DNA from: Takakia lepidozioides
Taxonomy: Eukaryota; Plantae; Bryophyta
Length of the DNA: 64,000 bases
Assembly: GCA_030704615.1 (NCBI GenBank)
Contig: CM060731.1
Span: 3,844,001 to 3,908,000, forward strand
Reading direction: 5' to 3'
The position numbers and the translations under genes were made by a program. This document shows positions 17,765 through 52,104 of the stretch, piece after piece; position 1 is the stretch's first letter; every line of letters starts with the position of its first letter. The notes beneath the pieces are model-generated. The model had not been told where the DNA came from. It worked only from the letters and a program-made list of their open reading frames with translations, and ran no database searches.

Positions 17765-18911
17765 ATGCGGAGCAGAGCGATGGCGGGGTGGTTGGGTGCG
17801 CTCCTCCTCCGCAGGGCAGTGTGGGCAGCGGGCAGCCATGGGCCGGGAGGCCTCGCCTCACGCACCACATTCCTGCTCCCGCATGTGGAGCTCTACAGCT
17901 TGCTAATTTCGGGGTCTAGTCCCTGGCAAGTGTTTCCTTCCCAGGTTGCAGGGATACCGAGGAAAGGTGTGGATTTGCCGGTTTTCGTTGCCGTCTTTTA
18001 TTTGGGGTCTCAGCACTATAGAGGATTCAGGCATGATGGCATAAACTACGCCTCCTTTGGCAGAAGAGGATAAATCTTTGGTCGTTCAAGGGCTCTAATC
18101 GACATCCTTGTACACCTCTGGTAGCTCTTGAAAAAATGTACAGCAGCAAGACCACATTGAATTTCTATGAGCGGCAGAGAGATTTTCATGGCTTGCTTTT
18201 GGCCACAGCCCTTTTGGATACCTTTTTCAGGAATACGCACGAGTTTTTTTTGGAGAGACAGAGAGAGAGAGATTTTATGGTGTTCTAAACTAGCATTTCT
18301 CAATGAACTCAGGCCATCAGGAGCTGCTACAGATTATATCCGGTGTGTGCATGCAGGCCTAGCTATAAGCATAGAACATCTTTGGCAGGAGTTCACGTCA
18401 GATGCTTCACACTGGTGGGACAACAGGCCTGACAAGGTGGGGCTATCTCAATTTTACCCAAATCATTTCTAGTTTGCAGAATAAATTGGCTTCAATATTA
18501 ATTCGCCCAAACCTGGGATATTCTTGTTTTTGGGACTGGATCACAGTTTCAGGTGATGCAGTTGATGACAGGCAAGTCTGTCGCACCTGCCATAGCGGTT
18601 CTCATAGTTGGGTCAGTCTATTGCTAATCCATGATACATTTATATTGGTTAGTCAATGTTGTGTCCAGTTGTTTGAAGTGATGCTTGTGGAGCTTTGGTG
18701 TTTGAACCTGATGCTCAGCTGCAAATGTGTGATTTTTACAGAAAAGTCGAATACCGCAGAACTCCAGATATAAGAACACAAAGGAGGTCCTATCGACTAG
18801 TGTTTGGCTGAATCCCCCTTGGCTGACATCAGAGCTAGTGGGCATGATACAAGGTGGAGAACAACTTACTGTCGATATACGCCATACAGCTGCAGGCCAA
18901 GAATACAATGG
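17765..18911 (+). CDS. Upstream exons of PPR paralogue 1: targeting-peptide-like exon plus OSB-type PDF motif exons
   Basis: Exons 17765-17966 (MRSRAMAGWLGALLLRRAVW..., phase-1 GT), 18357-18436 (LAISIEHLWQEFTSDASHWWDNRPDK) and 18742-18911 (KSRIPQNSRYKNTKEVLSTSVWLNPPWLTSEL...) are all GT-AG and mutually in frame. The homologous acceptor of the PPR exon is AT rather than AG at 19118-19119. Confidence 0.7.
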
Positions 18912-21274: not shown

Positions 21275-21615
21275 ATTTACTTCACAAGCAGCTGGATACA
21301 TTCTTTGCATAGGACAAAAACTGCAACCCCTAATCAAGAAATTTATGCTAATCTCAAGGGATTATCGAGGCGGATGAAGGTGGCCAAGTTTGTCCCTGAC
21401 ATGTGGTTGGTACTGCATGATTTCGAGGAGGAGCAAAAGGAATTCTTGGTTTGCCTCTACAGTGACAAGAATGCAATTGCTCTTGAGCTGGTCAGCCCCA
21501 CCAGGATGTTTATACCTCCACAATGGTGACTGTGTTGTTGGAACAGTTTTTGTATGAGACGCCAACCACTGTCACTATTTTCAAGATCTGATTTGTCTTC
21601 TGTATGTTACTAGTG
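21275..21615 (+). pseudogene. Decayed DYW domain of paralogue 1
   Basis: QEIYANLKGLSRRMKVAKFVPDMWLVLHDFEEEQKEFLVCLYSDKNAIA (HSE changed to YSD), then frameshifted remnants of RDANRFHHF. Confidence 0.85.
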
Positions 21616-24056: not shown

Positions 24057-24532
24057 TCTGTCCCCTGGGTAGACATTTCTGGCTTGTCAAGGTTGTGCTC
24101 ATGGAGGTTTTTGGGTTGTGAAGTTTGATCTGGGGTGTTTCCTCTTCTCCCGCATAATTACAAGAGAGCAACATTGTTTTTCATGGCTTACTTGCGCTGC
24201 TGTTCTCCTTAAAAAATACTCAACAGTTTTATCTCAGGGTGGTAGTTATGACAAGGCTTGCGCATTCCCATGTACATTCCCCTGCAGTTAGATGTGGTGC
24301 AAGAAGAAAAGCACTCTACCTGATAATATCTCAATTTCCCCCTATTTTCTAAGGCCCCTTGCTCTTTTTAGAAATAGAATTTAAGTACCGCAGAGTAGTT
24401 TTTACCACATTAACACCCATTGTTGCAGTGCAGAGCCACAGTTGCCAGTCATGTCAACGATTGGGTACAAGAGATGGCCTGATTGACATTTCATAAGTGG
24501 CGATGTGGAAAGTATCAGATTGTGCAGCAAAT

Positions 24533-25045
24533 AGCGAGCGATCCACAGCATACTGCAGCTTATGTGCTGCTATTGAACATCTATGCTGCGGCTGGTAGAT
24601 GGGAGGATAAAGCAAAGGTCAGAAAGATGATGGAGGACGGGGGTGTGAGGAAGGACCCAGGGTGTAGCTACATTGAGATCAATACCAAGGTGCATACATT
24701 TGTTTCAGACCCATCCACAAATTAAGGAAATCCAGGCTGAGCTAAAGAGGTTGTTTGGGCTGATAAAGGAGTCTGGGTATATGCCTGACATGCACTGTCG
24801 TGCATGATTTGGAGAAGCAAAAGGGTTTTCTCTTTGCTGACACAGTGACAGACTGGCTATTGCTTTTGGAATCATCAGCACACCCCCTGGGACATCTATC
24901 CGCATCATCGAGAACCTTCAGTGGTGACTGCCACACCGCTACCAAGTTCATTTCAAAGATTGCTTGGTGGACTGTTGTTGTGAGGGGTGCCGTTCATTTT
25001 CACCACTTCGAAGATGGGGCTTGTTCATGTGGGGACTACTGTTGA
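24533..25045 (+). pseudogene. Orphan E2/PG-box/DYW fragment without PPR array
   Basis: [46 protein letters not shown]...[10 protein letters not shown]...[13 protein letters not shown]...[16 protein letters not shown], with several frameshifts. Confidence 0.9.
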
Positions 25046-27503: not shown

Positions 27504-28665
27504 ATGATGGCAATGGGCTCGCATGCTCGTCAGCGTGCGCAGGGAGAGGCCATACCGAAGGTCCTGATCTCCCTTTGCGGTGGATGGGTGGGAGGCGTCA
27601 CGTCATGCAGCGGGTTGACAGGCCAGGCTGTGGAGCTGAAATGGGCATCCGAGTCTGCAATGCCATGCGCAACACCCTTGCATGCGATTTCGGCCCCGTC
27701 TCCCGGGAAAGCAAAGGAAGGTATGAAAGTGCAGCTCTTTACGGATTTTTAAGGTCTCGAACTTGGGTGCGCTCGGACCTTCATATGATTGTCCTTATAC
27801 CCTACCTGCAAATGCTACACTCCTTTCGATCGATCAGACAAGGGCTGTAAACAAATTTGGGTTCAATCGAGACCATCATCTATCTGAGTGTTCTGTTTGT
27901 TTTCTGTACCTTAATGGCATCTGTGAGATAGATTTTTCTTTGCATGGCCTTGAATCAATCCTTAGGATTAATTGACAAGTAGTTTACATAGTAGTTGAAT
28001 GAGGTGCAGTCATGCTGACAAGCTGTCACTGCCTGTCAAATGTGATGAAGAGCTTGTACTGGGAAGACTGCACTAGCAGAGATCTGCTAAAGAGGTGTTT
28101 GCATGCAGGCCACACAATAAGCGCAGAATGGCTATGGGAGGAATTAATGTCAGATCCTTCCCAGTGGTGGGACAACAGGTCCGACAAGGTGAGGCTATCT
28201 CTATTGTTGCCTGGTCATTTCTAGTTTCTACTCTCAAGAGGACTTTGGTTTGCTTATGAATGACGCTGGTATTTGAAGTGATCTTGCAGACGAGTTGATT
28301 CTCTAGGTCATCTTATGAATGACAATTCAGATCTGACCTGAGGCTTCTTCTTGCTGGGTCAGTTAATTTCTACACCACGGTATCATTGAAGCTTGTCAGT
28401 TCCTTGTTGTGGCATGTTGTGTGAAGCAATGCTTGTGGAGCTTTGGTGGTTACAGCCTGGTTGATATGAGGCTGTGGTTAAAGTTTCGCTGCTCAACTGC
28501 ACCCCGTTGGCTTTTTACAGAAGAAGCCAAGTTCAGGAGACTTCAGACATAAGTGCAGAAAGGAAGCCCTTTGGATTGAGACATTGCATTGTACTGATGG
28601 TATTGAAAACTAGAGAATGAGGAACGTCCATGTGCACCATGCTTCTCCTGGTAAAAATGCAGCGG
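27504..28665 (+). CDS. Upstream exons of PPR paralogue 2: leader exon plus OSB-type PDF motif exons
   Basis: Exons 27504-27720 (phase 1), 28109-28188 (HTISAEWLWEELMSDPSQWWDNRSDK), and from 28521 (KKPSSGDFRHKCRKEALWIE...). There is an in-frame TAG at 28611-28613 unless the GT at 28600 is used. Confidence 0.65.
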
Positions 28666-28874
28666 GTATTGGTTTCATTAATTAAAGAGTTGCAACTGAA
28701 GCAGATATAATTGGTACGGTTTATCTACATGCACGTGACTAGTAGAATTTCAAGGCTATAAGACTACTGTCAACGACATCAGGAATCTTGTGGCAAGTAG
28801 CCTATCGTCATGGAACTTTGTAGTGTTATGACCATGTCAAGTATGCGCAGAATTTTGTAACTAAAAGTTGAGTC

Positions 28875-31418
28875 ATGCAGGAAGCAGGGTTGAATCAGGC
28901 ACAGGTGTTTGCGGGACGTCATGCTGGTGGCAGGGGTAGCATCTCCAGCACTTCTTTTGAAAGAATACCTAGGGTGGCCATCGACAAGATCTCTTCTGGC
29001 ACTTGTGGGGATGTGCAGAGACTATGTAAGACGGGACAATTGAAAGCTGCACTGCAAATTTTGAACCATGGAGGGATTCGAGCAGACTGCAATACATATG
29101 TCTGCATCTTGCAGGAGTGCATCAATACGAGAGGCCTAGCAGAGGGCAAGCAAGTGCATGCCCACATTATACAAAGTCGATTAAAGCTGAACACATTTCT
29201 ACTCAACACCCTTCTCAACATGTATGCTAAGTGTGGTAGTGTGGTGGATGCATGCCAAGTGTTTGACAAAATGCCTGAACGAGATATATTTACATGGAAT
29301 ATAATGATAGCTGGATACGCCAAGCACAAGTGTGGTAAGGAGGCTTTCAAGATCTATAAGCAAATGCAACAGGAAGGGGCTGTGCCAGACAGGGTAACAT
29401 TCACTTCAGTGCTGAATGCATGTGCCATCCTCGGAGCACTGGAAAGGGGGAAAGAGGTCCATGATGATATCATGAAATCTGGAATTGCACCAGACATCAT
29501 TTTGGAAACTGCCATTCTTGCCATGTATGCCAAATGTGGGAGCATGAAGGATGCACGTCAAGTGTTCAACAGTATGGCTCAACGAAACGTGGTCTCATGG
29601 AATGCCATGATCGCTGGATGTGCTCAGCATGGACATGGTGGGGAGGCTCTGGACCTTTATGAGCAATTGCAACCGGAAGGGGTGATGCCAGACAAGGTCA
29701 CATATACGTGTGCTCTGAATGCGTGCGCCAGCTTAGGTGTTCTGGACAAGGGCAAAACAGTCCATGGACAGATTGACAAAGCTGGACTTGGGTCACATAT
29801 AGATTTGGAAAATACCCTTATTGACATGTATGCCAAATGTGGGAGCATGAAGGATGCACGCAAAGTGTTTGACAATATGGCGAAACGGAATGTGGTCTCA
29901 TGGAACTCTATGATCAGTGGATATAATCAGCATGGGGGTACTGGGAAGGGTTTCGAGATCTATGAGCAGATGCAACGTGAAGGGGTTACACCGAACAGGA
30001 TCACGTTCATTTGCGTCCTCAATGCGTGTGCCAGTGCAGGAACCCTGGGAAAGGGTAAGGAGGTGCATGCTGATATCATCAAGAGTGGAATTGTGCCAGA
30101 TATTATCCTGCATACAGCCCTTGTTGACATGTATGCTAAATGCGGGAGTATGGAGGGTGCGCGTCACGTGTTCAACACAATGACTGGCCGAGATGTGGTC
30201 TCATGGAGTGCAATGATCACAGCATGTGCCCAACATGGGTGTGGTAAGGAGGCTTTTGAGGTCTATGAGCAAATGCAAGAGGAAGGGATCATGCCTGACA
30301 GGGTCACATTCATCTGCATTCTTAATGTGTGTGCCAGCCTGGGTGCTCTGGAAAAGGGCAAGGAGGTCCTTGCGGACATCAGCAAAAGTGGGATTGTGCC
30401 AAACATTATTCTTGAGAATACAGTTGTTGACATGTATGCCAAATGCGGGAGCATGATGGATGCATGGCAAGCATTCAATAAGATGGGTAGACGGAATGTC
30501 ATTTCATGGAGTGCAATGATTGCAGGATGTGCCCAGCATGGGTGTGGCAGGGAGGCAGTGCAACTATTTGAGAAAATGCAACAAGAAGGTGTGAAGCCGA
30601 ACAGTATCACCTTTATATCTCTTCTCTCTGCATGCAGCCATGGGGGCCTGGTGGATGAAGGTTGTCGGTATTTTTATTCCTTGAGTCGTGATCATGGCCT
30701 CACTCCTACAAAGGAGCATTTTGGCTGCATGGTGGACCTTCTTGGTCGTGCAGGGCAATTTGATGAGGCAGAGAAGTTTGTTAATGAAATGCCAATTAAA
30801 CCAGATGTTGGTGTGTGGATATCCTTGCTTGGTGCATGCAGAATTCATCGCAATGTGGAGGTAGCAGAACGTGTCTCAAAAAGCATTATGGAGTGTGATC
30901 CACAGCAGGCTGGAGCTTTTGTGCTGCTATCAAATATCTATGCTGCGGCTGGCAGGTGGGATGATAAAGCAAGGATGAGAAAACTTATGGAGGACAGAGG
31001 TGTAAGAAAGGAGCCAGGGCTAAGCTGCATTGAGGTTGACAAACGGGTGCATCGATTCGTTGTAGAAGACAATGTGCACCCACAAATCATCGAAATCCAT
31101 GCCGAGCTGAAGAGATTGGCTGTACAGATGGAGGCGGCTGGGTATGTGCCTGACATGCGCTTTGTATTACATGATTTGGAGGAGGAAAAGGAATTTTCTC
31201 TTTGCCACCATAGTGAGAGGCTGGCCATTGCTTTTGGGCTCATCAGAATATCCCCAGGGACGCCTATCCGCATCATCAAGAACCTCCGTGTGTGTGGTGA
31301 CTGCCATGCCGCCACCAAGCTCATCTCCAAAATTGTTGGCCGGACAGTTGTTGTGAGGGATGCCAAGCGCTTTCACCACTTCAAAGATGGGGTTTGCTCT
31401 TGTGGGGATTACTGGTGA
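28875..31418 (+). CDS. PLS-E-DYW PPR protein, C-to-U RNA editing factor type (paralogue 2)
   Basis: 847-aa ORF with PLS triplets, PG box [24 protein letters not shown], and terminal CSCGDYW. Confidence 0.96.
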
Positions 31419-33511: not shown

Positions 33512-35926
33512 ATGGCAGGGTTGAATCAGGCACATTTGTCTGGTGGACATCAGGCTGGTGTCAGGAGAAGCACCTCAACCATCACCATTGGTTTTGATAG
33601 AGAACCAAGAGAGAGAATCAACAGTAGATATTTTCAGACTTGCGGGGATGTGAGAACAGTATGTGAGAGAGGACAACTGAAAGAGGCGCTGGACAACTTG
33701 AACCAGCAAGGCACTCAGGCAGATTCCAATACTTATGTCTCTGTCTTGAAGGAGTGCATAAAAATGAAGGACCTGGCAGAAGGAAAAGAGGTGCATGCGC
33801 ACATTATCCAAAGTGGGTTCAAGCCGAATATTGTTCTACTCAACACCCTTGTCAACATGTATGCAAAGTGTGGGAGTGTGGTGGATGCACGACAGGTATT
33901 TGACAAAATGCTTGAACGTGATATGTTTACATGGACTACAATGATAGGAGGATATGCCAAGCATGGGTATGGGAGGGAGGCTTTGAAACTGTATGAGCAA
34001 ATGCAACAAGAAGGGTTGGCACCAACCATGGTCACATTCATTTGTGTCCTCAATGCATGTGCCAGGCTAGGAGTGCTAGAAAAGGGTAAAGAGGTCCATG
34101 CCGACTTGGTGAAAGCTGGAATTGAGCCTGATGTCATGCTCGAGACTGCCCTGGCTGATATGTATGCTAAATGCAACAGCATGAAGGATGCACGTCAGGT
34201 GTTTGACAACATGACTCACCGAAATGTGGTTTCATGGAATGCTGTAATCACAGGATATGCTCAGCAGGGATGTGGTAAGGAGGCTTTAGAGATGTACAAT
34301 AAAATGCAACAGGAAAGGGTGGTGCCAGACAGAGTCACGTTCACATGCATTCTCCTTGCATGTTCCAAGCTAGGAGCCCTGACAAAGGGCAGAGAGGTCC
34401 ATGCTGATATCATCAAAGCTGGAATTGCCCCAGATGTCATTCTGGACACTGCCCTGGTTGACATGTATGCCAAATGTGCAAACTTGAGAGATGCTCGGAA
34501 AATGTTTGACAATTTGGCTAAACGAAATGTGGTCACATGGAATGCCATGATCACAGGATATGCTCAGCATGGCTGTTTTGACGAGGCGCTTGAGCTCTAT
34601 GTGCAGATGCAACGGGATGTGGTAACTCCAGATAGAGTTACATTTGTTTGCATTCTCAATGTGTGTGCCAGCCTAAGAGCCCTGGAAAAGGGGAAGTTGG
34701 TCCACGCTGACATTAGCAGAAGTCAAATTGCACCAGATATAATTCTAGACAATGCCCTTGTTGACATGTATGCCAAATGTGGGAGTATGAAGAATGCCCG
34801 ACAAGTTTTCAACAATATGGTTCGGCAAGATGTGGTCTCATGGAATGCCATGATTACAGGATATGCTCAGCATGGGCTTGGCAGGGAAGCTTTCGAGACG
34901 TACACCCAAATGCAACAGGAAAGGGTGAAGCCCAGTACTGTTACATTCATTTCCATTCTCAATGCGTGTGCCAGCCTAGGTGCCCTGGAAAAGGGAAAAG
35001 GGGTCCATGCTGACATCATCAAAGGTAGAATTGCATCATGTTTTGATTTGGAGACTGCCCTTGTTGACATGTATGCAAAATGTGGGAGCATAAAGGATGC
35101 ACGCAATGTGTTTGACACTATGGTGCAGCGGGATGTGGTCTCATGGACTGTGATGATTGGAGTATACGCCCAGCATGGGTGTGGTAGGGAGGCTTTCGAG
35201 ATCTATGAGCAAATGCAACTGGACGGGGTGACACCAAACAGGGTCACATTCACTTGCCTTCTCAAGGCGTGTGCCAGCCTAGGATCCCTTGAAAAGGTCA
35301 AAGAGGTCCTTGCTGACATTAGCAAATGGGGAATTGCACGAGATATCATCCTAGAGAACACCCTTCTTGACATATATGCCAAATGTGGGAGCATGGAAGA
35401 CGCACGTGAACTGTTTGATAATATGGCTCTACGAAATGTGCACTCCTGGAGTGCAATAATTGCTGGCTGTGCCCAGCATGGTCATGGTAAGGAGGCAGTG
35501 GAACTATTTGAACAAATGCAACGGGAAGGCTGTAAGCCGAACGGTATCACCTTTATATCTCTTCTGTTTGCTTGCGGCCATGGGGGTCTAGTGGACGAAG
35601 GCCGTCAGTACTTTAATTCCATGAGCCGAGATTATGGTGTTACTCCTACAATGGAGCATTTTGGCTGCATGGTGGACCTCCTTGGTCGTGCAGGCCGATT
35701 GGATGAAGCAGAAGATTTTATTTGTAGAATGCCAATTGAACCAGACGCTGGGGTGTGGATGGCCTTGCTCAGTGCCTGTAGAATTCATGGTGATGTGAAG
35801 GTAGCAGAACGTGCGGCAAGAAGCATTGTCAAGAGTGATCCACAGAATGCTGCAGCTCTTGCGCTGCTATCCAAGATCCATGCTGCAGCTGGCAGGTGGA
35901 ATAATGAAAGAAGATTAACAACATAA
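33512..35926 (+). CDS. PLS-class PPR protein (paralogue 3), truncated in E region; decayed DYW relic to ~36245
   Basis: ORF 33482..35926; acceptor tgcag|G ATG at 33511; 6 S-motifs; ends AAAGRWNNERRLTT*. Downstream EEQKELSL/HSE/TTKFIS remnants are out of frame. Confidence 0.92.
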   Translation: MAGLNQAHLSGGHQAGVRRSTSTITIGFDREPRERINSRYFQTCGDVRTVCERGQLKEALDNLNQQGTQADSNTYVSVLKECIKMKDLAEGKEVHAHIIQSGFKPNIVLLNTLVNMYAKCGSVVDARQVFDKMLERDMFTWTTMIGGYAKHGYGREALKLYEQMQQEGLAPTMVTFICVLNACARLGVLEKGKEVHADLVKAGIEPDVMLETALADMYAKCNSMKDARQVFDNMTHRNVVSWNAVITGYAQQGCGKEALEMYNKMQQERVVPDRVTFTCILLACSKLGALTKGREVHADIIKAGIAPDVILDTALVDMYAKCANLRDARKMFDNLAKRNVVTWNAMITGYAQHGCFDEALELYVQMQRDVVTPDRVTFVCILNVCASLRALEKGKLVHADISRSQIAPDIILDNALVDMYAKCGSMKNARQVFNNMVRQDVVSWNAMITGYAQHGLGREAFETYTQMQQERVKPSTVTFISILNACASLGALEKGKGVHADIIKGRIASCFDLETALVDMYAKCGSIKDARNVFDTMVQRDVVSWTVMIGVYAQHGCGREAFEIYEQMQLDGVTPNRVTFTCLLKACASLGSLEKVKEVLADISKWGIARDIILENTLLDIYAKCGSMEDARELFDNMALRNVHSWSAIIAGCAQHGHGKEAVELFEQMQREGCKPNGITFISLLFACGHGGLVDEGRQYFNSMSRDYGVTPTMEHFGCMVDLLGRAGRLDEAEDFICRMPIEPDAGVWMALLSACRIHGDVKVAERAARSIVKSDPQNAAALALLSKIHAAAGRWNNERRLTT

Positions 35927-36894
35927 TGGGAGGAGAGAGGGTCAGAAGGGACAAAGGACCTAGCTCCATGAGTGACCCATTCCTAGAAAGAGACAATTCA
36001 AGGATGCCCATACTGATAGTTAGGGCAGACAAACAGAGGCCAGGTACTTACGTTCCAAGCTTGTGGAGGAGCAAAAAGGAACTTTCGCTTTTGACCACAG
36101 TGAGATTCCGGATTCCCCTCAGCACGCCCTCATTTGCATTGTCAGAAACAATCGCCATACTACCACAAAGTTCATCTCAAGTTGCACAGGATCTGAAGCA
36201 CACTTTACACTTCCAAGACAGCAGCTGTGTTTGTGGGGTGGTAAAATGGGCACATGCATGATTGTGCACCGCGCCAAACTTCAGGTGAGTGTGGAGGTGT
36301 AATGATTGGTAATTGATTTGGCGGAAGATTCAAGTAAAATAAATAAGTTGTGAATTTGTGTGATTAAATGTGGCAGGCAGTACTGTACTTCTGGCTGCTC
36401 TGATGACAATTTCCGCAACTTCCGCGATGCAGGGCATTGTTATTGCAGAGGATTTGTCAAGGGTGGGCATGGAGCAAGCTATGGGCATCCCTGATCTAAA
36501 ACCTGGGAGCAATTATGACTGAATAATTGATGGGGTGGAGTGGGTTGGTGAGTGATAGAAAAGATGAAGAGAGAAAGGTGGAGAGAAGGGAAGAGGGAAG
36601 CAGGGGCAAGGGGCGGCGCCCGAATTGTAGAGCTATTTTGCAATTTTCGTTCTTTGGAGGATTTCATCCATATCCCACAAATGGACATGGATTTAATGTG
36701 TAACTGGTGTGCACAACACCCATTTCAGCACTCTGTTCAGGCCTTGCATGCTACCACAACATTTATAAAGGGAACTCCTAATCCTTCCCCAGATTTGAAC
36801 ACCGACCCCATGTTTTAAAGTGTGATTTTGTTTGCAACCTATCTTCTAATAAGCAGAACAATCTGCACACTTTCTTTGTTGCATGTTTCTGAGT

Positions 36895-38805
36895 TCACCA
36901 GTAATCCCCACATGAACAGTCCCCATCTTTGAAATGGTGAAACCTGCTGGCATCCCTTATAACAATTGCTCGTCCGACAATCTTTGAGATGAACTTTGTG
37001 GCTGTGTGGCAATCACCACACACCCGAAGGTTCTTGATTATGCGGATAGGAGTTCCAGGAAGTGTGCTGATGAGCCCAAAAGCAATGGCCAGCTTCTCAC
37101 TGTGGTGGCAAAGAGAAAACTCCTTGAGCTCCTCCTCTACATCATGTAATACAAAGCGCGTGTCAGGCATATACCCAGCCTTCTCCATCTCCCCAGACAA
37201 TCTCTTCAGCTCAGCATGGATTTCAGTTATTTGTGGGTGCCATTTGTCTTCTACAACAAAGGTATGCACGAAGTTATTAATTTCAATGCAGCTGCGCCCT
37301 GGCACCTTCCTGACACCTCTGTCCTTCATCATCTTTCTCAGCTTTGCTTCATCATGCCACCTGCCAGCTGCAGCATAGATGTTTGATAGCATCACATAAG
37401 TTGCGGCATCCTGTGGATCCCACTGGAGAAGGCATTTTGCCACATGTTCTGCTAGCTGTAGATTGCCATGAATTCTGCAGGCACCAAGCAAGGCCCTCCA
37501 CACCCCAGTATCTGCTTCGATTGGCATTTTGCTAATGAAGTCCTCTGCCTCTTTTAATCTCCCAGCACGGCCAAAGAGGTCCACCATGCAGCCAAAATGC
37601 TCTACTGTAGGGGTGAGCCCATGATCTCGACTCATGGAATTGAAATAGTGATGGCCTTCATACACTAGGCCCACATGGCTACAGGCAGAGAGAACACATA
37701 TAAAGGTGATACCCGTCGGCTTTGAGCCTTGCTGTTGCATTTGCTCAAACAGTTGCAAAGCCTCCATACCATACCCATGCTGAGCATATCCTGCAATCAT
37801 TGCATTCCATGTGACCACATCTCGCTGAGCCATATTGTCAAACACTCTCCGTGCATCCTTCATGCTCCCACATTTGGCATACATGTTGACAAGGGCAGTG
37901 TCCAGAATTATGTCTGGTTCAATTTTGGCTTTGATGACGTCAGCATGGACCTCTCTGCCTTTATCCAGGGCTGCCAGGCTGGCACACGCATCGAGAACAC
38001 TAGTGAACGTCACCAAGTTGGGGGTTATTCCTTCCCGTTTCATTTCCTTGTAGGTCACTAAAGCTTCCCTACCACACCCATGCTGAGCATATCCTGTAAT
38101 AATCACACTCCATGAGACCACATTTCGGTGGGCCATACTGTCAAACACGTGACGCGCATCTTTTACACTCCCGCATTTGGCATACATGTCAGCAAGGGCA
38201 GTCTCCAATATGATATCTGGTGCTATTCTGGCTTTGATGATGCCAGCATGGACCTCTTTGCCCTTTTCCAGGGCTCCTAGGCTAGCACATGCCTTGAGAG
38301 CACAAATGAATGTGACCCTGTTGGGTGTCACCCCTTTTCGAATCATTTCCTCATAAATTTCCAAAGCCTCCGTACCACACCCATGCTTTGCATACCCTGC
38401 CATCATTGTAGTCCATGTGAACACATCCCGTATAGGCATTTTGTCAAACAGTTCGCGTGCAGCCACCATGCTCCCACATTTGGCATGCATGTTGACAAGG
38501 GTGTTGAGTACAAAGATATTTGCCTTGATTCCACTGCGAATAATGTGGGCATGCACTTGTTTTCCCAGCTCTACATCCTTAACTTTGATGCACTGCTGCA
38601 AGAGACAAACATATGTTTTGGAGTCTGCCAAAATGACTTGTTGGTTTAAAATGTTCAGCGCTTCTTTCAATTGTCCAGCCTTACATAGAGTCCTCACATG
38701 CCCAAAAGTGCCAGAGGAGTCCTTATGAACTTTCTCTCTTTCAATAGCATTTGTGATGGTGGAGGTGCCTGCTTCCCACAACTCTGCCTGAATCAACCCT
38801 GACAT
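36895..38805 (-). CDS. PLS-E-DYW PPR protein, C-to-U RNA editing factor type (paralogue 4)
   Basis: 636-aa ORF with 3 S-motifs, KVPGRSCIE, HSEKLAIAFG, CGDCH, CSCGDYW; splice acceptor gtgcag immediately before the ATG. Confidence 0.96.
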   Translation of the reverse strand: MSGLIQAELWEAGTSTITNAIEREKVHKDSSGTFGHVRTLCKAGQLKEALNILNQQVILADSKTYVCLLQQCIKVKDVELGKQVHAHIIRSGIKANIFVLNTLVNMHAKCGSMVAARELFDKMPIRDVFTWTTMMAGYAKHGCGTEALEIYEEMIRKGVTPNRVTFICALKACASLGALEKGKEVHAGIIKARIAPDIILETALADMYAKCGSVKDARHVFDSMAHRNVVSWSVIITGYAQHGCGREALVTYKEMKREGITPNLVTFTSVLDACASLAALDKGREVHADVIKAKIEPDIILDTALVNMYAKCGSMKDARRVFDNMAQRDVVTWNAMIAGYAQHGYGMEALQLFEQMQQQGSKPTGITFICVLSACSHVGLVYEGHHYFNSMSRDHGLTPTVEHFGCMVDLFGRAGRLKEAEDFISKMPIEADTGVWRALLGACRIHGNLQLAEHVAKCLLQWDPQDAATYVMLSNIYAAAGRWHDEAKLRKMMKDRGVRKVPGRSCIEINNFVHTFVVEDKWHPQITEIHAELKRLSGEMEKAGYMPDTRFVLHDVEEELKEFSLCHHSEKLAIAFGLISTLPGTPIRIIKNLRVCGDCHTATKFISKIVGRAIVIRDASRFHHFKDGDCSCGDYW

Positions 38806-39250
38806 CCTGCACCACTCAAAAGTTGTACATTAGAAAACTTTCATACTCAAAATTCACTTACTGTATGTCAAAGCTCCTATGTACCTGCAAGATCTCTTCA
38901 TTAGGACGAGGTCCTTGATACAGTATGAGATTCTTTGACAGGATTCCAATACCGTCTACTTACAGCATGAAGGTGCATGCTTGCAACAAATGTACCAATT
39001 CGTGACACCAGCTGCAGTGCCATTACTGTCCTTTTATGTTTGGACTACCAAAAACGAATTCTGACACACTGACACAGAAATATGACATAAAACTTGTGCA
39101 AATCTTCCCCGTTTGTAACCTCTTATGTACCCCACATTACAACTTTTCAGCTCTGAAACTAAATATCTCATACCTTCAAAACATACAAATTTTCTGCTTA
39201 GTTTGCAATGGGATGCTCATGTCTCCTCATGAAAATGATATTGAGAGTAC

Positions 39251-40782
39251 CTAGCAAATACCCCACGCAACTAACAAAGAGAGATCACAAGTCTGGAGGT
39301 CTGCATCTTTAGAAGAGGGGCTGTCATACTGGAAGTGCCTCGACAATCGCCCTCCACCAAGACTGCCCTCAGACTTTTGCCTAGCTGATTCCAGCTTCTG
39401 CAACGGTCCAACTAACCCCACAGGTTCCTTGTAGCTATCAAACCACAGTGCCTCGTTGGTACTCCTATGCTGGAAATCTGGTGCTCTGGGATTGATCTGC
39501 ACCTACAATCCATCCCTACCTCCTCAGCAACTGAAATCATCGAATTACGAGTATTGAGTGTTGATTTAAGGGTTGGCATTGACATCACACTAGGCCACAC
39601 GTCAGGAGCTCCCCACTTGTGTCACAAACCCCACTACAAAAATTTATCTACCCGCACGCTCCCACAACACAAACAGGTAAAAGTGATTAGTAGAATGAAG
39701 GAACCTAATGCTCCTCCTCCTCTTAAGTCCTTGCCGTATCCAGATGAGATACTGATGTGAGGTTGAAGGACAAACGAAAGTAGCACTGACCTTGGCAATT
39801 TTTACAGGAATCTTGTACATATCTACATAGAAGTCCACAGCCAAACGCACTGTAACATAGATCTGGTCCCCTATCTTCACATGTTGCCCTCCACTCTCAG
39901 CCAGGGCATCCCAAATCTCCAACTCCAACCTGTCATCCAGCTATATCAATTACATATATGTGTAGCACATTACAAACAGGGTCCATGATACCTTTTGAGG
40001 GACAATGGAAGTTCATACAATAAAAAGTAACAAGAAGGCCTTCTACTTCTGACATAATAGCAAGAATAGCACTCTTCGCCAATGTAATTGGAACGACACC
40101 CATACATGCGCAATCCTAGTGTTTTTCCAATCGAATCGGACAATGACGACCTACTGCACCCACCAACTGAGAAGTAGCGGGTTAGATTTCTTGTTCGCTA
40201 CACAAATCAACCTAATATTTTCTTCTGCCATTACAGAACCCCTTATAGCCCCTCTCTATGTGTCCTTTTATATTTTTTTGGTATGAGAAAAATAGCTCAC
40301 CAGCTCAGAACATCTGTCTTAGTAGCAGGCTTCAGCAGAGCAAGGCTGGATTTCGCCAAGACTTTTCCAGTATTCAAATACTTGATCTGTATGTCACGAC
40401 CCACAAGGCCAATGAGGTGAACTATGTTGGCCAATTCTTTGCTGAATCTGACCACGGGTGGCCATGGCCACTTAGTTTTCTCAAGCTCCAGGTGGCCTGC
40501 TTGCTCATCCACCTGTCCATAACCCTGGTCCTCCTCTATTGGTGTCCACTCCCCCGCAATTGGCTTAAAACTGTTTGAAACTGAACTCAACGCAATGCAG
40601 TTCGGAAAATGCAGATGCGTGTACAGCCCCGTCCTCGAAGGTTTCAGCCCACGGCCAAGCTTGTAAGCCGCGTAGACTCGAGGAGGCTTGTGGGGCCATC
40701 CCGAGATGCCTCGAGAACATGCCTTGGAGGAGGCCACCAAAGGGATGATGGGCAGGGCAGCCGTGTCCCCAACGGGTGCCAT
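39251..40782 (-). CDS. OSB: OSB-like organellar single-stranded DNA-binding protein (SSB OB-fold plus partial PDF motif), possibly the 5' part of the PPR-DYW gene
   Basis: In-frame GT-AG exons: 40782-40301 (transit-like N-terminus; ELANIVHLIGLVGRDIQIKYLNTGKVLAKSSLA...SW), 39929-39791 (LELEIWDALAESGGQHVKIGDQIYVTVRL) and from 39496 (INPRAPDFQHRSTNEALWFDS). No WWDNR exon is visible. Confidence 0.85.
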
Positions 40783-42165
40783 ACGTACTGTATGCGCTAC
40801 CCTTTCGGCTCCTTCTCCACCTGTTCGAACAAACTAGATTCTGGGAGTTCTTCTCAGTAAAGAAGAAAATTGAGGCAAGTACTAGAAAGAAAAGAAAGGC
40901 TAAACATGTACCCAGAGATCCTCTGATCAGAGTCTGAGAATACAGCGTCACCTCCTGCATCTTTCAACCCAAGCCTTCCGCAGGGCGAGCAGAAGTATCG
41001 ACCCACCACCGACCCCGGGATAACGTGAAATGCCCATGCCCTGGCAGCATTGCTCTCATAACAGCACGATGCGTACAGTGACATATGCCCAACATCAGCC
41101 TTTCCAAAAAACTGATTTCCTGCTTGCTTCTCCATGCACAATTCCTCACATCACGAGTGCTCAGCTCTTCTGCATCGCCTGAAGTCCCCTCTGAGAGCGC
41201 AATGTAATCTCCTGCTCCTCACATCACTAGTGCTCTCAGCTCTCCTCCACCCATGCAGTCCCCTCTGAACCTGGCAATATTGAGCTGAGCTCTTTCATCA
41301 AAAGTGACGCCTTGTACTGCAATTTTATGTCTGGCTGATCAAACATTTGCTCATTCTCTTGCCACAATGCAGGCATGCCTGTGCAACGCATTGTACTGTC
41401 CTGCCTGTTGTTCGATTGCCAACGCTGCTTGTGATGCCTGCCATGGGGCCAGGCTTGGCTCAAATGCCTGATTGGTGGATGGCTGCTGTGATTAGAGGGC
41501 ACCCAATCGCCCAATCGGGTTCCCATGGATGGATGGCGCCATATTTCAGAACAGCGTTCCCGATCAGGAAGAAAAACATGTGATTGCGTGGATCTCTGAA
41601 ATCTGCATGTAGACACTACACACCTCCTTGACAAAGGAGGTAGCCCTTTAGAAAATTCGATGGGAGTTGTAGGGCCTCTGCATTGGAGTTGAATTCCAAG
41701 TTGAAGGCCACAAAGAAAATTTCATATTGCAATCCATTCAGTGAAAATCTCTGAAAATGTATGTGGAGACAGATGTCGGAGGTTGTCGGTAAGAACGTTC
41801 CTTTCTATAGATCTAGGGTGGGCAAAGACATGGCCAAAAAAGTGAGCTTTGGTCATGAGTCTGCAGTGCAGTGGCATTTTGGTGAAACTTGGAGCATTTG
41901 GGTGAAGCTGACAGGACATGCCCAATCAGCTTTGTCTCTTGCAGAGTGTGGCCATGGGTGAACCATTTCTTATTCTTGTGTATCTTGTGTATTCCTGTTG
42001 GATTTTTTTAATGAGCAGAAGACATGGTTCGACAGATTTCCACTGTAGTCAGTAGGAATCACTTTAGGATGTCTCATAAAGTCATGCTTCTTCCTCCTCT
42101 CACACGCACCCATCCTCCACAAATTTTCACATGTTTGCAGTGTTGTCCCACCTACCAGCCACATC

Positions 42166-46068: not shown

Positions 46069-49000
46069 ATGGATCCAGCAAAAAATAATAAAGTGCTGAT
46101 GCGGGCCAGGATGAAGGAGGCCGCTCTGAAACGAGAGAAGCGCATCGATTCTCCTCTAGTCAGGTATGCCTCGCTTTGCAATCTCTCTCATTCTCTCGCA
46201 TTCATATTCAGCTGTCCGTCTGTCTTTCACCAAACCCACGATCAGACAGAGCACTTTGGTGATCTGAAGAGCTCCTTGGATACGCTTTGACACTTTCGAA
46301 ATTAAGCTGCACGTACTTTCCTCCGTCCCCAACACTTAACTCAAACCCTAATCCTAAAGCGGATGCTGAATTCCTAGCAGGCGTTGTGCTAGATTTAAGA
46401 GAAGGTTTTGCAACTGCAGTAGGTAGGTGTTAATCTGCGTTCTCATTAGATACATTGTGGGAAGACAGTGCCGGATTTCCCTTGTGAAACTGCCAGTGCA
46501 TTTTTTTGCTGAACGTAGATTTCTGGTGGTGCATTGTTGCTGATTTAAGCACAGTCAGTGTCATGAGCCAGGAGTGTAGTTGGGGTACAGACAGACTATT
46601 GCAGGAGTCTCACCTTCAAAGATATCTGTGCTGAGTCTGCCCCGCTGCTGACTGTGCAAAGTGTTACCCAAACAAAAGATTGGTTTCTATGCGCGCCTTG
46701 TAAGGTGCCATTCTCACGTTGCTGCTGGATATCCGTTCGAATGCTGGCAGGTACAATGAAATTGGGCAAGCGGTATGCAAGGTGTGTAATGTGGTCATCA
46801 AGTCAGAGACCATGTGGGCCCCACATTTGGCTTCCCGATCTCACAAGGAGGTATTATCTGTCTTTTGCTCCCACCTGCCCCTTTCCTGTCTCCTTTTCGA
46901 ACTGGGTGCGCCCACTTTCTTAAGATGAGGTTGCTGTAACCGTGGAACATTGCAGATGGTAGGGCTCTCAAGGTCTTGTTGTTTTGGTGACTCACTCTTG
47001 CCCTGATACATTTTTGGTGCCATGAAGCTTAGACCAGTGAGCTATTACGCTTTCTTCAATGGATGGCTGCTTCCAAGCTCACCTCCTGGTTGTCACCTCC
47101 CAATCACTTCCTTTTCCACCAAGTGATTGTTTAGGGACCTTAGCATACAATCTGGGCTGTTTTCCTCTCAACTTTGGATCTTTGAATGGGCAAACTCTTA
47201 TCTCTACGAAGTCACGGCCAGTATTCAGAGGGAAATTCGAAGTCCACAAGCCTATGGAAATCTGTCTTATCTAGATGACATCTCTTGTTCTCAGGCTCTC
47301 TCTAAGCATCCTCAACTATTGGAGGGCATCCTTTCTGCTTGTGAGTGGCTGGGCAACAATTGACTCACTGACTGTAGCATCATCATGCTGCTGTCCGCAC
47401 ATGGTCTATGGCCAACAAGGCTATGGCTAGCAGGGTTCACTGACTATGTCGTGTCCCAAAGTGTTTGAACAAAAAACTGTGGGAGGGTTTTCCGAAGCAG
47501 AGATCAGTGACAGATGTGTCTGTGTGGGCATGATAGGCGGCTGAGCAATTGAAAGCACGTGCTGCCAAGCCAGTACAAGTAGCGGGGACCACCGAGAGCC
47601 AAGCACATGTTGCGGCGGTGCCAACCAAGCGCTCATCGCACTTGCCTTCAGACTTCTTTGATTCTTCAACACCCTCTTCGACTACGAAAAGATTGCGCCC
47701 AACTGGTGCGGTCCTCTCTTCCTCACTCTTACAGTAAGACAGAAGTCAACCTATTACAAATCGTTTCCTTCTGGTTGATATCCAGCATTCAGCTCTGTGC
47801 AGTGTTAGAGAAGTCCATTGGCACATGTGTCATCTACACAATCGTGCAGAAGATACACTTGTGGAGGACGGACCATGATTGTTTCTAACAGAATGCCGAC
47901 AGCAAGAAAGAAGAAAGAAAGGAAGAAAGGAAGAAATTTATTATGTTCATGGGAGGTCCAAAAGGCCCAGGAAGGAGATAGAGGGAGAGAGTTCTACATG
48001 CAAGTCTTGATTTGCAAACAATCTAGTGAGTTGGGGGTGTGGAGGGAATGTCACTTGGGCATTCCTCACTGTTGGAAATGCGGACAGCAGGAGATGAAAC
48101 ATCTACTTTGACAAAAGATATGTTTAAGGTACCAAGGGAAGAATCAAGACTGGGCACAAGAAAGAACGGAGCTCATGAAAAGACACCACCTGGCAGAAGT
48201 GGGCAGGGTGGTGGGGTGTCTGAAGAAAGCAGTGCGAAAGTCAAGGACCAGACAGCTACTGAGCAAGTGGGAAAACCTTCATCCCTGCCGGAAGGCTTTT
48301 TTGATAGCGTTGATGCTGACCACCGAGCTCGCGGGTTAGAGCCTCCCAAACTTGATATGAAGTAAGCACTATCCCTCTCTCCCCCTCCCTCTCCCAACCG
48401 CACAAAGGAACATCAAGGTTCGTTTAAAGAGCTTTTTGATGCTGGTCACCAGACCAAAGTTCAAAATAAGAGTAGGTTGCCTTTGGAGTGAGCCTTCCAC
48501 AGTGCTCTCCTGCTGTCCCCTTCCCTCCTCTATTTCCGTTCTCTGCTCCATTCCCAGTGGTTGTGGGGTTCATGACCATAAGGTTACAGCAGGCAGTACG
48601 TAACGAGGATACATGTCTGTCTTTTGGTGTATCTCTGACCTTGGTTTCAGTTGTTCTAGCATGCTCAAATTTTTTCGTTTCTCTTTAGTGTTTGAACCAA
48701 ACTGGGTGGGAATGATGTAGAGATGAGTGGAAAGAGTTTCAGAAGTCCATACGTGATGATTTACACGAAGTTGACTATAGGCAACAAGAGGAAGAGGTAT
48801 TTATTCTGTGTTCTCTTAACTATTGATTTAGTTTTCTGCTGGATTTCATTCCGATCTTTATATTATCAGCTCAATTACCCAGGCCTGATGAGCTTGCTGA
48901 AAAGCTAATCATTTATACCAAATGTATTGTAGTATGAGGCTGCGGAGGAGAGAGAGGAACGGGAGCAAGTGGAGCAAAGGTATCTTGGCAGTTACGCTGA

Positions 49001-49347
49001 ACATCTTTTATCGAGAGGTTTGGTTATTTGGGGGGTAACTGCTCTTTCAGATATTTCCCATTTCAAATTGGACATGAAACTTTCTGAACTGTGTTCATAT
49101 GTACTTTAATCTGTTGTTTTCAGGAAGAAGGCTCTATTGACCCATTTAAGTTTCTCTCTGTGACAGAACATTTTTGGAGCGAATTGAGATGTTTCGGAAA
49201 CAGAAACAACAGAAGGCTTCTCAGGCTCAGGCAGCACTGGCCTTTCCTGCTTTTGGGGCTGAAAGTGATGCTTCCGCTTCCGATGATGATGGCAGTGATG
49301 ATGAAAATCTATTTATAGATTGGCGGGCAAAGCAAATTTCACTTTGA
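46069..49347 (+). CDS. ZNF830: Zinc finger protein 830-like (C2H2/U1-type zinc finger, coiled coil)
   Basis: Seven phase-compatible GT-AG exons: 46069-46163, 46751-46850, 47537-47705, 48088-48361, 48721-48796, 48933-48979, 49167-49347. Motifs RIDSPLVRYNEIGQAVCKVC...HLASRSH, LPSDFFD, LPEGFFD, DEWKEFQK and C-terminal DWRAK. Confidence 0.92.
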
Positions 49348-49503
49348 TTTTAACAGGCAAGAGAAGACAACTATGTGGTCTGAGAAGAGGAAAGGAAGCT
49401 TAGATCTCTGATGTAAAATGAGAATGAGGCTCAGATTTGAGGACAAATAGTGCTTTAGAGTGGTGAACAATGATAGGAAGGGGATGTTTTTAATCCTGGT
49501 TAG

Positions 49504-52104
49504 ATGACCAAAGGTGATGAAGTGTACTTTGAGAATGCTGCTGGCACTTGTGGAGATGTCAGCAAACTGTATAAGGCAGGACTATCACAACAGGCACATC
49601 ACATTTTGAACCTGCAACCACACACTTGGGCGGACTCCAATGTCTCTGTCTTTTCCTTGCGAGAGTGTATCAATATGAAAAGGATATGCAAAGCATGGGC
49701 ATGCTGAGGGGGCTTTGGAGATCTATGAGCAAATGCACAGGGAAGGGGTGATGCCAGACAAGGCCACAGTCACTTGTGTTCTCAATGCACGTGCCAGGCT
49801 AGGAGCCCTGGAAAAGGGCAAAGAGGTCCACGCCGACATCATCGAAGCTGGAATTGCACCAGATATCATTCTGGAGACCGCCCTTGCTGATATGTATGCC
49901 AAGTGTGGATGCATGAATGATGCGCAACGAGTGTTTGATAATATGGCCCATCGAAATGTGGTCTCATGGAATGCAATGATAGCAGGATATGCTCAGCATG
50001 GGTGTGGTAAGGAGGCTTTCAAGATCTATGAGCAAATGCGAAGGGAAGGGGTGATTCCTGACAGGGTCACGTTCACGTGCGCTCTCAATGCATGTGCTGG
50101 CCTAAGAAGCCTGGAAAATGGCAAAGAGCTCCATGCTGGCATCATTAATGCTGGAATTGCACGAGATATTACTCTGGAGACTGCCCTTGTTGACATGTAT
50201 GCCAAGTGCGGGAGCATGAAGGATGCGCGTCAAGTGTTCGACAATATGGCTACACGAAATGTTTTCTCATGGAATGCCATGACCGCAGGGAATGTTCAGC
50301 ATGAGTGTGGTAGGGAGGCTTTGGAGGTCTATGAGCAAATGCAACGGGTAGGGGTGATTCCTGATAGCATCACCTTCACTTGCCTAGTCAATGTGTGTGC
50401 CAGCCTGGGAGCCCTGGAAAAGGGCAAAGAGGTCCATTCTGATATCAGCAGAACTGGAATGCTGCCACCAATCACCCTTGAGAATGCACTTATTGATATG
50501 TATGCCAAATGTGGGAGCATAAAGGATGCACGGCAAGTGTTGAACAGTATGTCTCAAAGAGATGTGGTATCATGGCAATGATCGCAGGCTATGCTCAGCA
50601 TGGATGTGGTAAGGAGGCTTTCGAAATTTACGAAAAAATGCAACAGGAAGGGGTGGTGCCCAACAGAATCACATTCACCTGCCTTCTCAATGCATTTGCC
50701 AACTTGGGAGCCCTCGAAAAGGGAAAGGAGGTCCTTCACAACCTCAGAGGACGTGGAATTGTGCCAGATATCATTCTCGAGAACACCCTTCTTGGCATGT
50801 ATGCCAAATGCGGGAGCATGAAGGATGCACATCAACTGTTTGACAACATGGCTCAACGAAATCTGATCTCATGGAGTGCTATGATAGGAGGAAGTGCACA
50901 ACATGGATGTGGTAGGGAGGCCTTGCAACTATTTGAACAAATGCAACAGGAAGGCTTGAAACCAAACAGTATCACCTTCATATCTCTCCTCTCTGCCTGT
51001 AGCCATGTGGGCCTGGTGGATGAAGGCCAGCACTACTTTGATTCCATAAGTTGCATTCATGGTCTCTATCCTACTGTGGAACATTATGGCTGCATGGTGG
51101 ACCTACTTGGCCGTGCAGGGCAATTGGAAGAGGCAGAGGATTTCATTAATAAGATGCAATCAAACCAGATGCTGGGGTGTGGAGGGCCTTGCTTGGTGCT
51201 TGCAGAACTCACGGTGACATAGGGGTAGCAGAATGTGCAGCAAAAAGACTTCTCGAGAGGGATCCGCACCATGCTGCAGCTTATGTGCTGCTATCAAACA
51301 TTTACGCCGCAGCTTGCAGGTGGGAAGATAAAGCAAAGGTGAGGAAATTGATGGAGGACAGAGGTGTCAGAAAGGAGCCAGGACAAAGCTGCATTGAGAT
51401 CGACAAACGGGTGCATAGATTTGTTGTACAAGACAAAGTGCATCCGCAAATAGAGGATATCCATGCTGAGCTGAAGAGGTTGGCTGGGCGGATGAAGGAG
51501 GCTGGGTATATGCCTGACACGCAATTTGTATTGCATGATGTGGAGGAGGAGCAAAAGGAACTTTCTCTTTGCCACCACAGTGAGAAGCTGGCCATTGCTT
51601 CTAGAACACCTATTCGTGTTGTCAAGAACCTTCAGGTGTGTGGCGACTGCCACACTGCCATCAAGTGTATATCTAAGATTGCTGGGCGAGAATATGTAAA
51701 CCCAAGTTTCAATCAAGGAAAATTGGCGAGTGACTAGCTAGCACGATTGAAGTGGGGGGGCTAGTGGAGAGGCAGGGGAAAGACACGCAGGGGCGAGAGA
51801 AAAGGGGGGGCTGTCGAGTAGACGGGTCCGGGCTGTAGGGACACCTAGAAAGAGGGGGGAGGGAATGCTTTATTTATAGAAGGTAGGAAATAGGCCCACC
51901 ATTGGATCAGCCAGTGGTGGGTTACAATTAGAGTTTTTATGGGCTTGGAATTAGTAGGAAAGTGTCAAAGGGTGGGGTGCTTTATGTAGAGTAGGACACG
52001 TGGGGCTGTCTTAGAAGTATGTAGGGTCTTCTGGAAGTTGTACGTGATACGAACCGCTTCCACCATTTCCAAGATGAGGTTTTTTCCTGTTGGGAGTACT
52101 GGTG
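49504..52104 (+). pseudogene. PLS-E-DYW PPR pseudogene (paralogue 6)
   Basis: ORF pieces 49504, 49715, 50509 and 51177 are joined by frameshifts. First L/S motifs are deleted; HSEKLAIA with a downstream deletion; CGDCH; terminal VVRDTNRFHHFQDEVFSCWEYW* (52037-52104) is separated by an insertion. Confidence 0.9.
51694..52036 (-). mobile_element. ~340-bp insertion in the DYW domain, resembles a partial LTR
   Basis: Interrupts IAGRE/VVRD. Starts near TGTAAACCC and has a minus-strand TATA box (tttatttatag, 51869-51879) with purine-rich flank. Confidence 0.55.

Follow-up and report, generated by a model that had tools for sequence, protein, structure and literature searches.

The 64,000-nucleotide (nt) window analysed here, which is the whole stretch from position 3,844,001 to 3,908,000 of contig CM060731.1 of the moss Takakia lepidozioides, contains on its minus strand, between 40782 and 36895, a real transcribed chimera between a gene of the OSB family and an exon that encodes a PPR protein with a DYW domain. 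The two parts are out of frame with each other in the only isoform seen. We assign a probability of about 0.58 to the reading that this is a secondary chimeric gene, in which an OSB duplicate came to lie before a PPR exon of a local cluster, and which was formerly in frame, now gives an out-of-frame mRNA and is at an early stage of decay. A preliminary description of the region placed three OSB-type exons before an intact PPR-DYW exon on the same strand, and its sequence statements, coordinates and phases hold.

Two sequencing runs, X1 and X2, cover the stretch, and both were taken by guess to be RNA. The depth of X1 falls to zero over a whole bin in intron 1 and likewise in intron 3, so the X1 signal comes from spliced RNA. 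A 902-nt spliced contig of this run (depth 15; 15.1 unrounded) is made of the pieces 40485-40299, 39927-39789, 39500-39250 and 38805-38481; after assignment of the letters shared at the borders, the exons end at 40301, run from 39929 to 39791 and from 39502 to 39251, and resume at 38806. The OSB-to-PPR junction in RNA is 39251→38806, with more than 240 gap-free letters on each side in this one contig. The junction sequence is TAG-G-ATG, which is the stop of open reading frame (ORF) 1, then, across the splice site, one base and the start of ORF2 in another frame. The donor used is the GT at 39250-39249, immediately 3' of the TAG, and the acceptor is the AG at 38808-38807, exactly the one that had been set aside beforehand as being of phase 2. 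The join expected instead, 39262→38798, is correct as in-frame arithmetic (921 amino acids, aa) but is not the one used in RNA, so the expectation that OSB and PPR exons are spliced together is borne out, only not from donor 39262. More than 100 GT/GC-AG pairs in the region, this one included, give an open frame, and frame fit alone is therefore no evidence for a junction. The single SSB-PDF-PPR-DYW protein proposed in the preliminary description is not what this junction encodes, because it retains the stop with a frame offset of one base, and neither OSB domain is complete.

Contig depths are alike along the transcript, at 11.6 in the leader, 15.1 in the junction contig and 12.5 in the 3' untranslated region (UTR) of the PPR part, and contigs of similar depth span 40484-41600 upstream and the 3' UTR down to 36430. 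Both ORFs lie on one RNA in that a single contig bridges the junction; no contig piece reaches the end of the DYW domain. The depth of X1 in the bin 39096-39276 is wholly accounted for by the out-of-frame contig (2.25 x 181 = 27 x 15.1). Run X2 confirms the start of exon 3 at 39502, which is 6 nt upstream of the OSB-homologous acceptor, and has zero cover at the last junction. Two other accounts of the frame difference were rejected. An assembly indel at the junction is contradicted by the gap-free RNA contig, whose sample differs from the assembly at a few other sites, and stop read-through fails because three-frame translation places another stop in the ORF1 frame about 21 codons into exon 4. 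At bases 36663 and 40748 the assembly disagrees with both runs (strain difference or assembly error), and X1 also departs from it at 38732-38733. Over 39372-39502, the PDF part of exon 3, bin arithmetic leaves about 65x contig depth in X1 beyond the junction contig; this surplus suggests an expressed paralogue at least 90% identical, which could be the native OSB gene or another OSB-PPR copy.

The descent of the 5' part from an OSB gene is borne out by both sequence and intron positions. In mosses the OSB gene consists of five exons (phases 2, 0, 1 and 0); of these the chimera keeps 1, 2 and 5, with the same borders. Homology searches used single exons as queries, and combined exons entered only the frame counts, the simulation and one tree. 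Pfam SSB matches of single exons are weak and below the cut-off (E 0.074 for exon 1 and 0.007 for exon 2). With exon 1, HMMER finds 47 relatives among 1.84 billion proteins (best E 6e-22), none longer than 481 aa; the best 26 of the 47 are OSB-type proteins or fragments, the top ones from mosses, and carry no PPR sequence. Homologue searches with the OB part of exon 1 or the N-terminal linker of the PPR part gave no match and, being length-limited, are uninformative on fusions. None of the exact window proteins is present in the protein collection searched, and in the ESM Atlas exon 1 gives only SSB leads below 0.9 and exon 3 no match. The OSB part is 56% identical to Sphagnum OSB over 161 aligned columns and nests within moss OSBs beside Sphagnum in the tree (support 83/75, and 76/76 for the moss group, unstarred). 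Its branch is long, at 0.82 against a median of 0.19.

The SSB-like OB fold is not complete, since its last strand is cut, and neither is the 50-aa PDF motif. In the Sphagnum OSB model, OSB exon 3 encodes residues 204-211 of the last OB strand (197-211), and OSB exon 4 encodes the first helix and the WWDNR strand of the PDF motif; both exons are missing in the chimera. The loss of the last strand and of the WWDNR exon had thus been recognized correctly beforehand, but it involves two OSB exons and not one. Eight of the 18 invariant PDF positions lie in the lost exon and three of the remaining ten are changed, with conserved K, W and V altered in the half that is left; one Gly of the OB fold is also changed. 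Intron 2 holds no detected trace of OSB exons 3-4, and a search for remains of the 5' exons of siblings likewise found none. The OSB tail is complete in exon 3 (LQKLESARQ ... DADLQ vs LEKLEAARQ ... GADFKDF in mosses). A probable vestige of the native OSB stop, an off-frame TGA, lies further upstream, at 39287-39285, and therefore the donor used and the donor at 39262 would both be in the old 3' UTR. ORF1 has stayed open despite an excess nonsynonymous divergence (dN) of about 0.1 and the lost invariant residues (in simulated neutral decay, P 0.045 that no stop arises and 0.001 once indels are counted). By composition only, its N-terminal 60 aa are transit-peptide-like, with 1 acidic, 8 basic and 8 Ser/Thr residues, and its product of 290 aa, in which the OB fold is broken and the PDF motif halved, may be targeted to an organelle. 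Ceratodon KC19_11G152900 (P0072) is a second moss OSB-like paralogue, which has an SSB domain without a PDF motif, so PDF-losing OSB duplicates occur in other mosses.

ORF2 (38805-36895) is intact and encodes a PPR-E-E+-DYW protein of 636 aa. Its canonical repeats follow the order L-S-P-L-S-P-L-S-P2-L2-S2, with the P2-L2-S2-E1-E2 ending, and its DYW domain has the HxE and CxxC motifs and the terminal DYW. The zinc and catalytic motifs are intact, and the code residues are canonical. The ratio of nonsynonymous to synonymous divergence (dN/dS) of the DYW domain is 0.14 against the intact sibling at 28875-31415, and in simulation ORF2 is unlikely to stay open past about 2% neutral divergence (P 0.06). 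Its N-terminus, with 5 acidic residues in 40, is unlike a transit peptide, and it has no in-frame targeting sequence, as the junction seen puts a stop before it. Seven related PPR copies lie in the window, and only ORF2 and the copy at 28875-31415 retain an intact DYW domain; the five others are broken C-terminally, and the group is a birth-and-death cluster.

The chimera shares with its siblings, which are PDF-PPR genes, the PPR exon, the acceptor of this exon and the final 150-245 nt of intron 3. The 3' part of intron 3 is homologous to the last intron of these siblings over 38929-38778 (nhmmer E 9e-13), and pairwise comparison extends the homology to about 39051. This shared sequence indicates that the PPR exon and the 3' end of intron 3 derive from the local PDF-PPR cluster, and places the putative seam of the chimera within about 39050-39250. 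No full PDF motif is joined in frame to the PLS array in the chimera, whose donor is downstream of the old OSB stop, whereas sibling donors are inside coding sequence (of the sibling PDF exons, 18742-18911 and 44288-44137 have phase-2 ends, and the second joins the shared acceptor in frame). The earlier proposal that the promoter, transit peptide and PDF exons of an OSB gene were co-opted by a PPR exon comes close to this, as RNA does join OSB exons to the PPR exon, but half of the PDF motif is lost and the join is out of frame.

In the history that we favour, a moss OSB gene would have been duplicated at the DNA level, with introns kept and exons 3-4 lost, and the duplicate would have come before the PPR exon of one tandem PDF-PPR member, replacing the 5' exons of that member. 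Transcription from upstream of the OSB part would run through, and a GT of the old 3' UTR, as seen in RNA, is spliced to the conserved PPR acceptor. On the resulting out-of-frame mRNA, ribosomes would translate ORF1 and then stop, and ORF2, which lies behind this stop and 14 AUGs and lacks a targeting peptide, would yield little or no editing enzyme from this isoform. Because more than 2 kb follow the stop, the mRNA may also be prone to nonsense-mediated decay. This decay pathway is present in moss (PMC6009662). The 14 AUGs of ORF1 are no depletion, since codon shuffling gives an expectation of 10.4 +/- 2.4, and 22 further AUGs occur in 40783-41616; because of those in ORF1 and up to 22 in the leader, leaky scanning to ORF2 is unlikely by the criteria of PMC11892635. 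Until recently the OSB part may have given a promoter and a transit peptide or linker to an in-frame fusion. We infer such a fusion, either recent or made from a minor donor, because both ORFs are open, which neutral decay seldom allows. The in-frame and out-of-frame states differ by one base within 39252-39272, and the disabling step could have been such a difference or a shift of the donor, which would leave the chimera in an early phase of decay, a state shared by most of its neighbours.

Several points weigh against this history. The formerly in-frame step is inferred. The junction 39251→38806 is the only OSB-PPR junction among the contigs listed and comes from a single contig of a single run, and RNA contigs drop rare isoforms, so that the main form is seen and not necessarily the sole one. 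The dN/dS of the OSB part is unusable because the synonymous divergence (dS) to other mosses is saturated, and neither terminal inverted repeats nor target-site duplications were found flanking the OSB part, so no transposon termini mark an insertion.

It is possible, though doubtful, that an in-frame organelle protein uniting the OSB OB/PDF part with an active PPR-DYW editor is made through a minor splice form or by close paralogues. In that case one lineage would have recruited OSB to an RNA editor a second time, independently, with a choice of 5' splice site that switches between OSB-only and fusion products; in a variant of this reading, stop-start re-initiation would yield both proteins. 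A working fusion from the locus itself, through a minor 5' splice site (GT after 39330, 39276 or 39267, joined to 38806), is rather unlikely. Its product of 900-920 aa would consist of a transit peptide, a degenerate OB/half-PDF linker and the PPR-DYW editor, and 39262→38798 is a less likely route to it. Both ORFs are intact, the loss of the native OSB stop permits alternative donors, and the three donors named give open frames and match the U1 consensus at 5/9 each, like the donor used; however, no such junction is among the contigs listed, the X1 depth over 39096-39276 leaves nothing for it to explain, and even this protein would have an incomplete OB fold and PDF motif. We regard it as improbable that ORF2 is translated alone from the ATG at 38805, either by re-initiation at TAG-G-ATG or from a shorter transcript beginning in exon 3 or intron 3, with the OSB part serving as leader or as the first ORF of a two-ORF mRNA. 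The intact ORF2 with its canonical code residues and constrained DYW domain would fit this, as would the single base between stop and start, the ATG at or near the PPR exon start in three siblings too, and an X2 RNA contig within intron 3 (38887-39058, depth 2.5). Against it, the AUGs of ORF1 are not depleted, unlike in leaky-scanning algal bicistrons, re-initiation falls with the length of the upstream ORF (PMC11892635), and the acidic N-terminus of ORF2 is not transit-peptide-like. Still less probable is that the locus consists of two separate neighbours, a truncated paralogue of OSB and a PPR pseudogene lacking a promoter, which are joined by incidental read-through splicing and whose fusion was never functional. 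The donor in the former OSB 3' UTR and the out-of-frame junction agree with this, and a frameshift two codons ahead of the stop would be near neutral, but the spliced join is the main path of the contig, depth is similar from the leader to the PPR 3' UTR, and it is hard to see why ORF1 on its own, with its two domains broken, should have been kept open.

The PDF-PPR family itself descends from an OSB gene, because an intron interrupts the PDF motif of the siblings at the OSB position. This intron position would also suit a preserved ancestral OSB-PPR fusion at the present locus, which would be the source of the family and whose sisters would have lost the OB fold later, as the preliminary description had it. 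We consider this very improbable, and the chimera is unlikely to be the family origin. Its PDF exon is of the moss OSB type, with the full tail and a vestige of the stop, and is 58% identical to that of Sphagnum OSB but only 12-27% to those of its own siblings, which keep the WWDNR exon that the chimera lacks; the position of its donor past the old stop also separates it from them. A metagenome scan with the PDF alignment found 11 loci in which PDF immediately precedes a PPR array; nine also have DYW, and none of the 11 has an SSB match. These loci come mostly from samples that also hold Sphagnum-type OSB genes and are presumably from Sphagnum. In the best PDF tree, which left out two very long sibling rows and one algal row, the chimera exon falls with moss OSBs and two siblings with the metagenome PDF-PPRs (95/87). 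With 48 columns, the approximately unbiased (AU) test does not reject the chimera exon and the PDF-PPRs as one clade (p 0.095 and 0.156), so the grouping of siblings with SSB-less PDF-PPR genes is favoured, not proven. From the best tree and the retained WWDNR exon of the siblings, the PDF-PPR family looks older than the chimera.

Two of the metagenome genes (L015 3623-6628 and L022 1439-4063) are intronless single-ORF PDF-PPR-E-DYW genes, which are retrocopy-like, lack the PDF-splitting OSB intron and are probably from Sphagnum. ORFs of OSB architecture (SSB plus PDF), green-alga-like, occur in marine and freshwater metagenome contigs (L016, L027, L052, L055 and L083). A bacterial origin of the high-GC contigs among those with SSB plus PDF was dropped, as the ORFs look algal; no OSB is listed for the green algae examined in PMC4166229. 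No description of OSB or PDF linked to PPR proteins was found in the literature searched.

The secondary chimera that we favour would be a PPR editing gene apparently caught in gaining 5' exons from an unrelated organellar gene. Capture of a promoter and transit peptide followed by splicing from a 3' UTR is a possible route by which the large PPR families of early land plants obtained targeting signals and extra domains, and parallels how the undescribed PDF-PPR family may have begun. The locus also shows that in-frame joins drawn on a genome can mislead, as RNA here uses another junction. The chimera as it stands is no evidence for a deaminase targeted to single-stranded DNA.

Table. Parts of the OSB-PPR chimeric gene in window coordinates
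Feature	Position	Strand	Remarks
Unspliced transcribed region 5' of ORF1	40783..41600	-	Leader or read-through of upstream gene; X1/X2 contigs
Exon 1, coding part (OSB exon 1)	40301..40782	-	ATG, transit-peptide-like N-terminus, opening half of the SSB-like OB fold; phase 2 at its end; RNA shows the splice to exon 2
Exon 2 (OSB exon 2)	39791..39929	-	Central part of OB fold; 139 nt (Sphagnum and Physcomitrium: 136); phase 0 at its end, which falls midway through the last strand
Intron 2	39503..39790	-	288 nt; site of the missing OSB exons 3 and 4
Exon 3 (OSB exon 5)	39251..39502	-	Second half of PDF motif (PDFQHR), entire OSB C-terminal tail, about 35 nt of former 3' UTR
Vestigial native OSB stop (TGA)	39285..39287	-	Probably put off frame by a 1-nt deletion at about 39293-39292; alignment by eye to moss OSB gene ends
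TAG closing ORF1 (290 aa)	39251..39253	-	Final three bases of exon 3
Intron 3	38807..39250	-	444 nt; 3' part homologous to last intron of siblings, 5' part not
Exon 4	36895..38806	-	A single G precedes ATG 38805 of ORF2 (636 aa), which encodes an acidic N-terminal linker, 11 PLS repeats, E1, E2/E+ and DYW
DYW cytidine-deaminase domain	36898..37176	-	HSE, CxxC and terminal DYW intact
Transcribed 3' UTR	36430..36894	-	Depth 12.5

The leader has a degenerate tandem duplication at 41143-41268 (period about 73 nt, with a 54-nt core 83% identical) and, at 40910-40821 on the minus strand, an intron-like GT...pyrimidine tract...AG, which is retained in contigs of both runs. The upstream sibling at 45528-42166 (minus strand) has a PDF exon (44288-44137) that joins its PPR exon in frame, a stop in the E region and no DYW remnant, and read-through of its transcript may extend into the OSB leader. 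The sibling at 28114-31415 (plus strand), with an intact DYW domain, has a PDF exon with a stop and a frameshift and an in-frame ATG at 28875 in the final bases of the intron, and is a second intact editor cut off from its 5' exons. The copies at 19106-21496, 24507-25039, 33515-35941 and 49679-52102 (plus strand) are broken at or after the E domain; upstream of the last, when its start is taken as 49519, at about 48930-49350 (plus strand), are spliced non-PPR coding exons ending in ...DWRAK. The PPR count of T. lepidozioides is 2,016 (PMC13386178).

Among known systems, fusions such as RRM-PPR, MORF-PPR and RRM-DYW (PMC13386178) show that PPR and DYW modules often fuse with nucleic-acid-binding domains; they are in frame, unlike the chimera, and OSB and PDF are nowhere mentioned in that survey. 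Green-algal bicistronic nuclear mRNAs (PMC11892635) resemble the chimera in having two long ORFs with a very short spacer on a spliced mRNA, whereas the chimera lacks AUG depletion in ORF1, has a long AUG-rich leader and is without evidence of conservation in other species. OSB proteins (Arabidopsis OSB1-4 and the single Physcomitrium OSB; PMC6963530, PMC4166229) have the same order of transit peptide, OB fold, PDF motif and tail, but the chimera lacks exons 3-4, the first PDF half and use of the native stop, and is spliced to a PPR exon. With PLS-class PPR-E-E+-DYW C-to-U editors, such as moss PPR56 (PMC10482289) and the synthetic PPR-DYW of PDB 9kfx, the chimera shares the PLS array, E1/E2/E+ and DYW motifs; its editor, however, is the second ORF of the mRNA seen and lacks a transit peptide in frame. 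PDF-PPR(-DYW) genes, represented by the window siblings, L015 and L022, have a full two-part PDF motif in frame with the PPR array and no OB fold, whereas the chimera has OSB-type 5' exons and half a PDF motif out of frame, and shares with the window siblings the PPR exon, its acceptor and the 3' end of the last intron.

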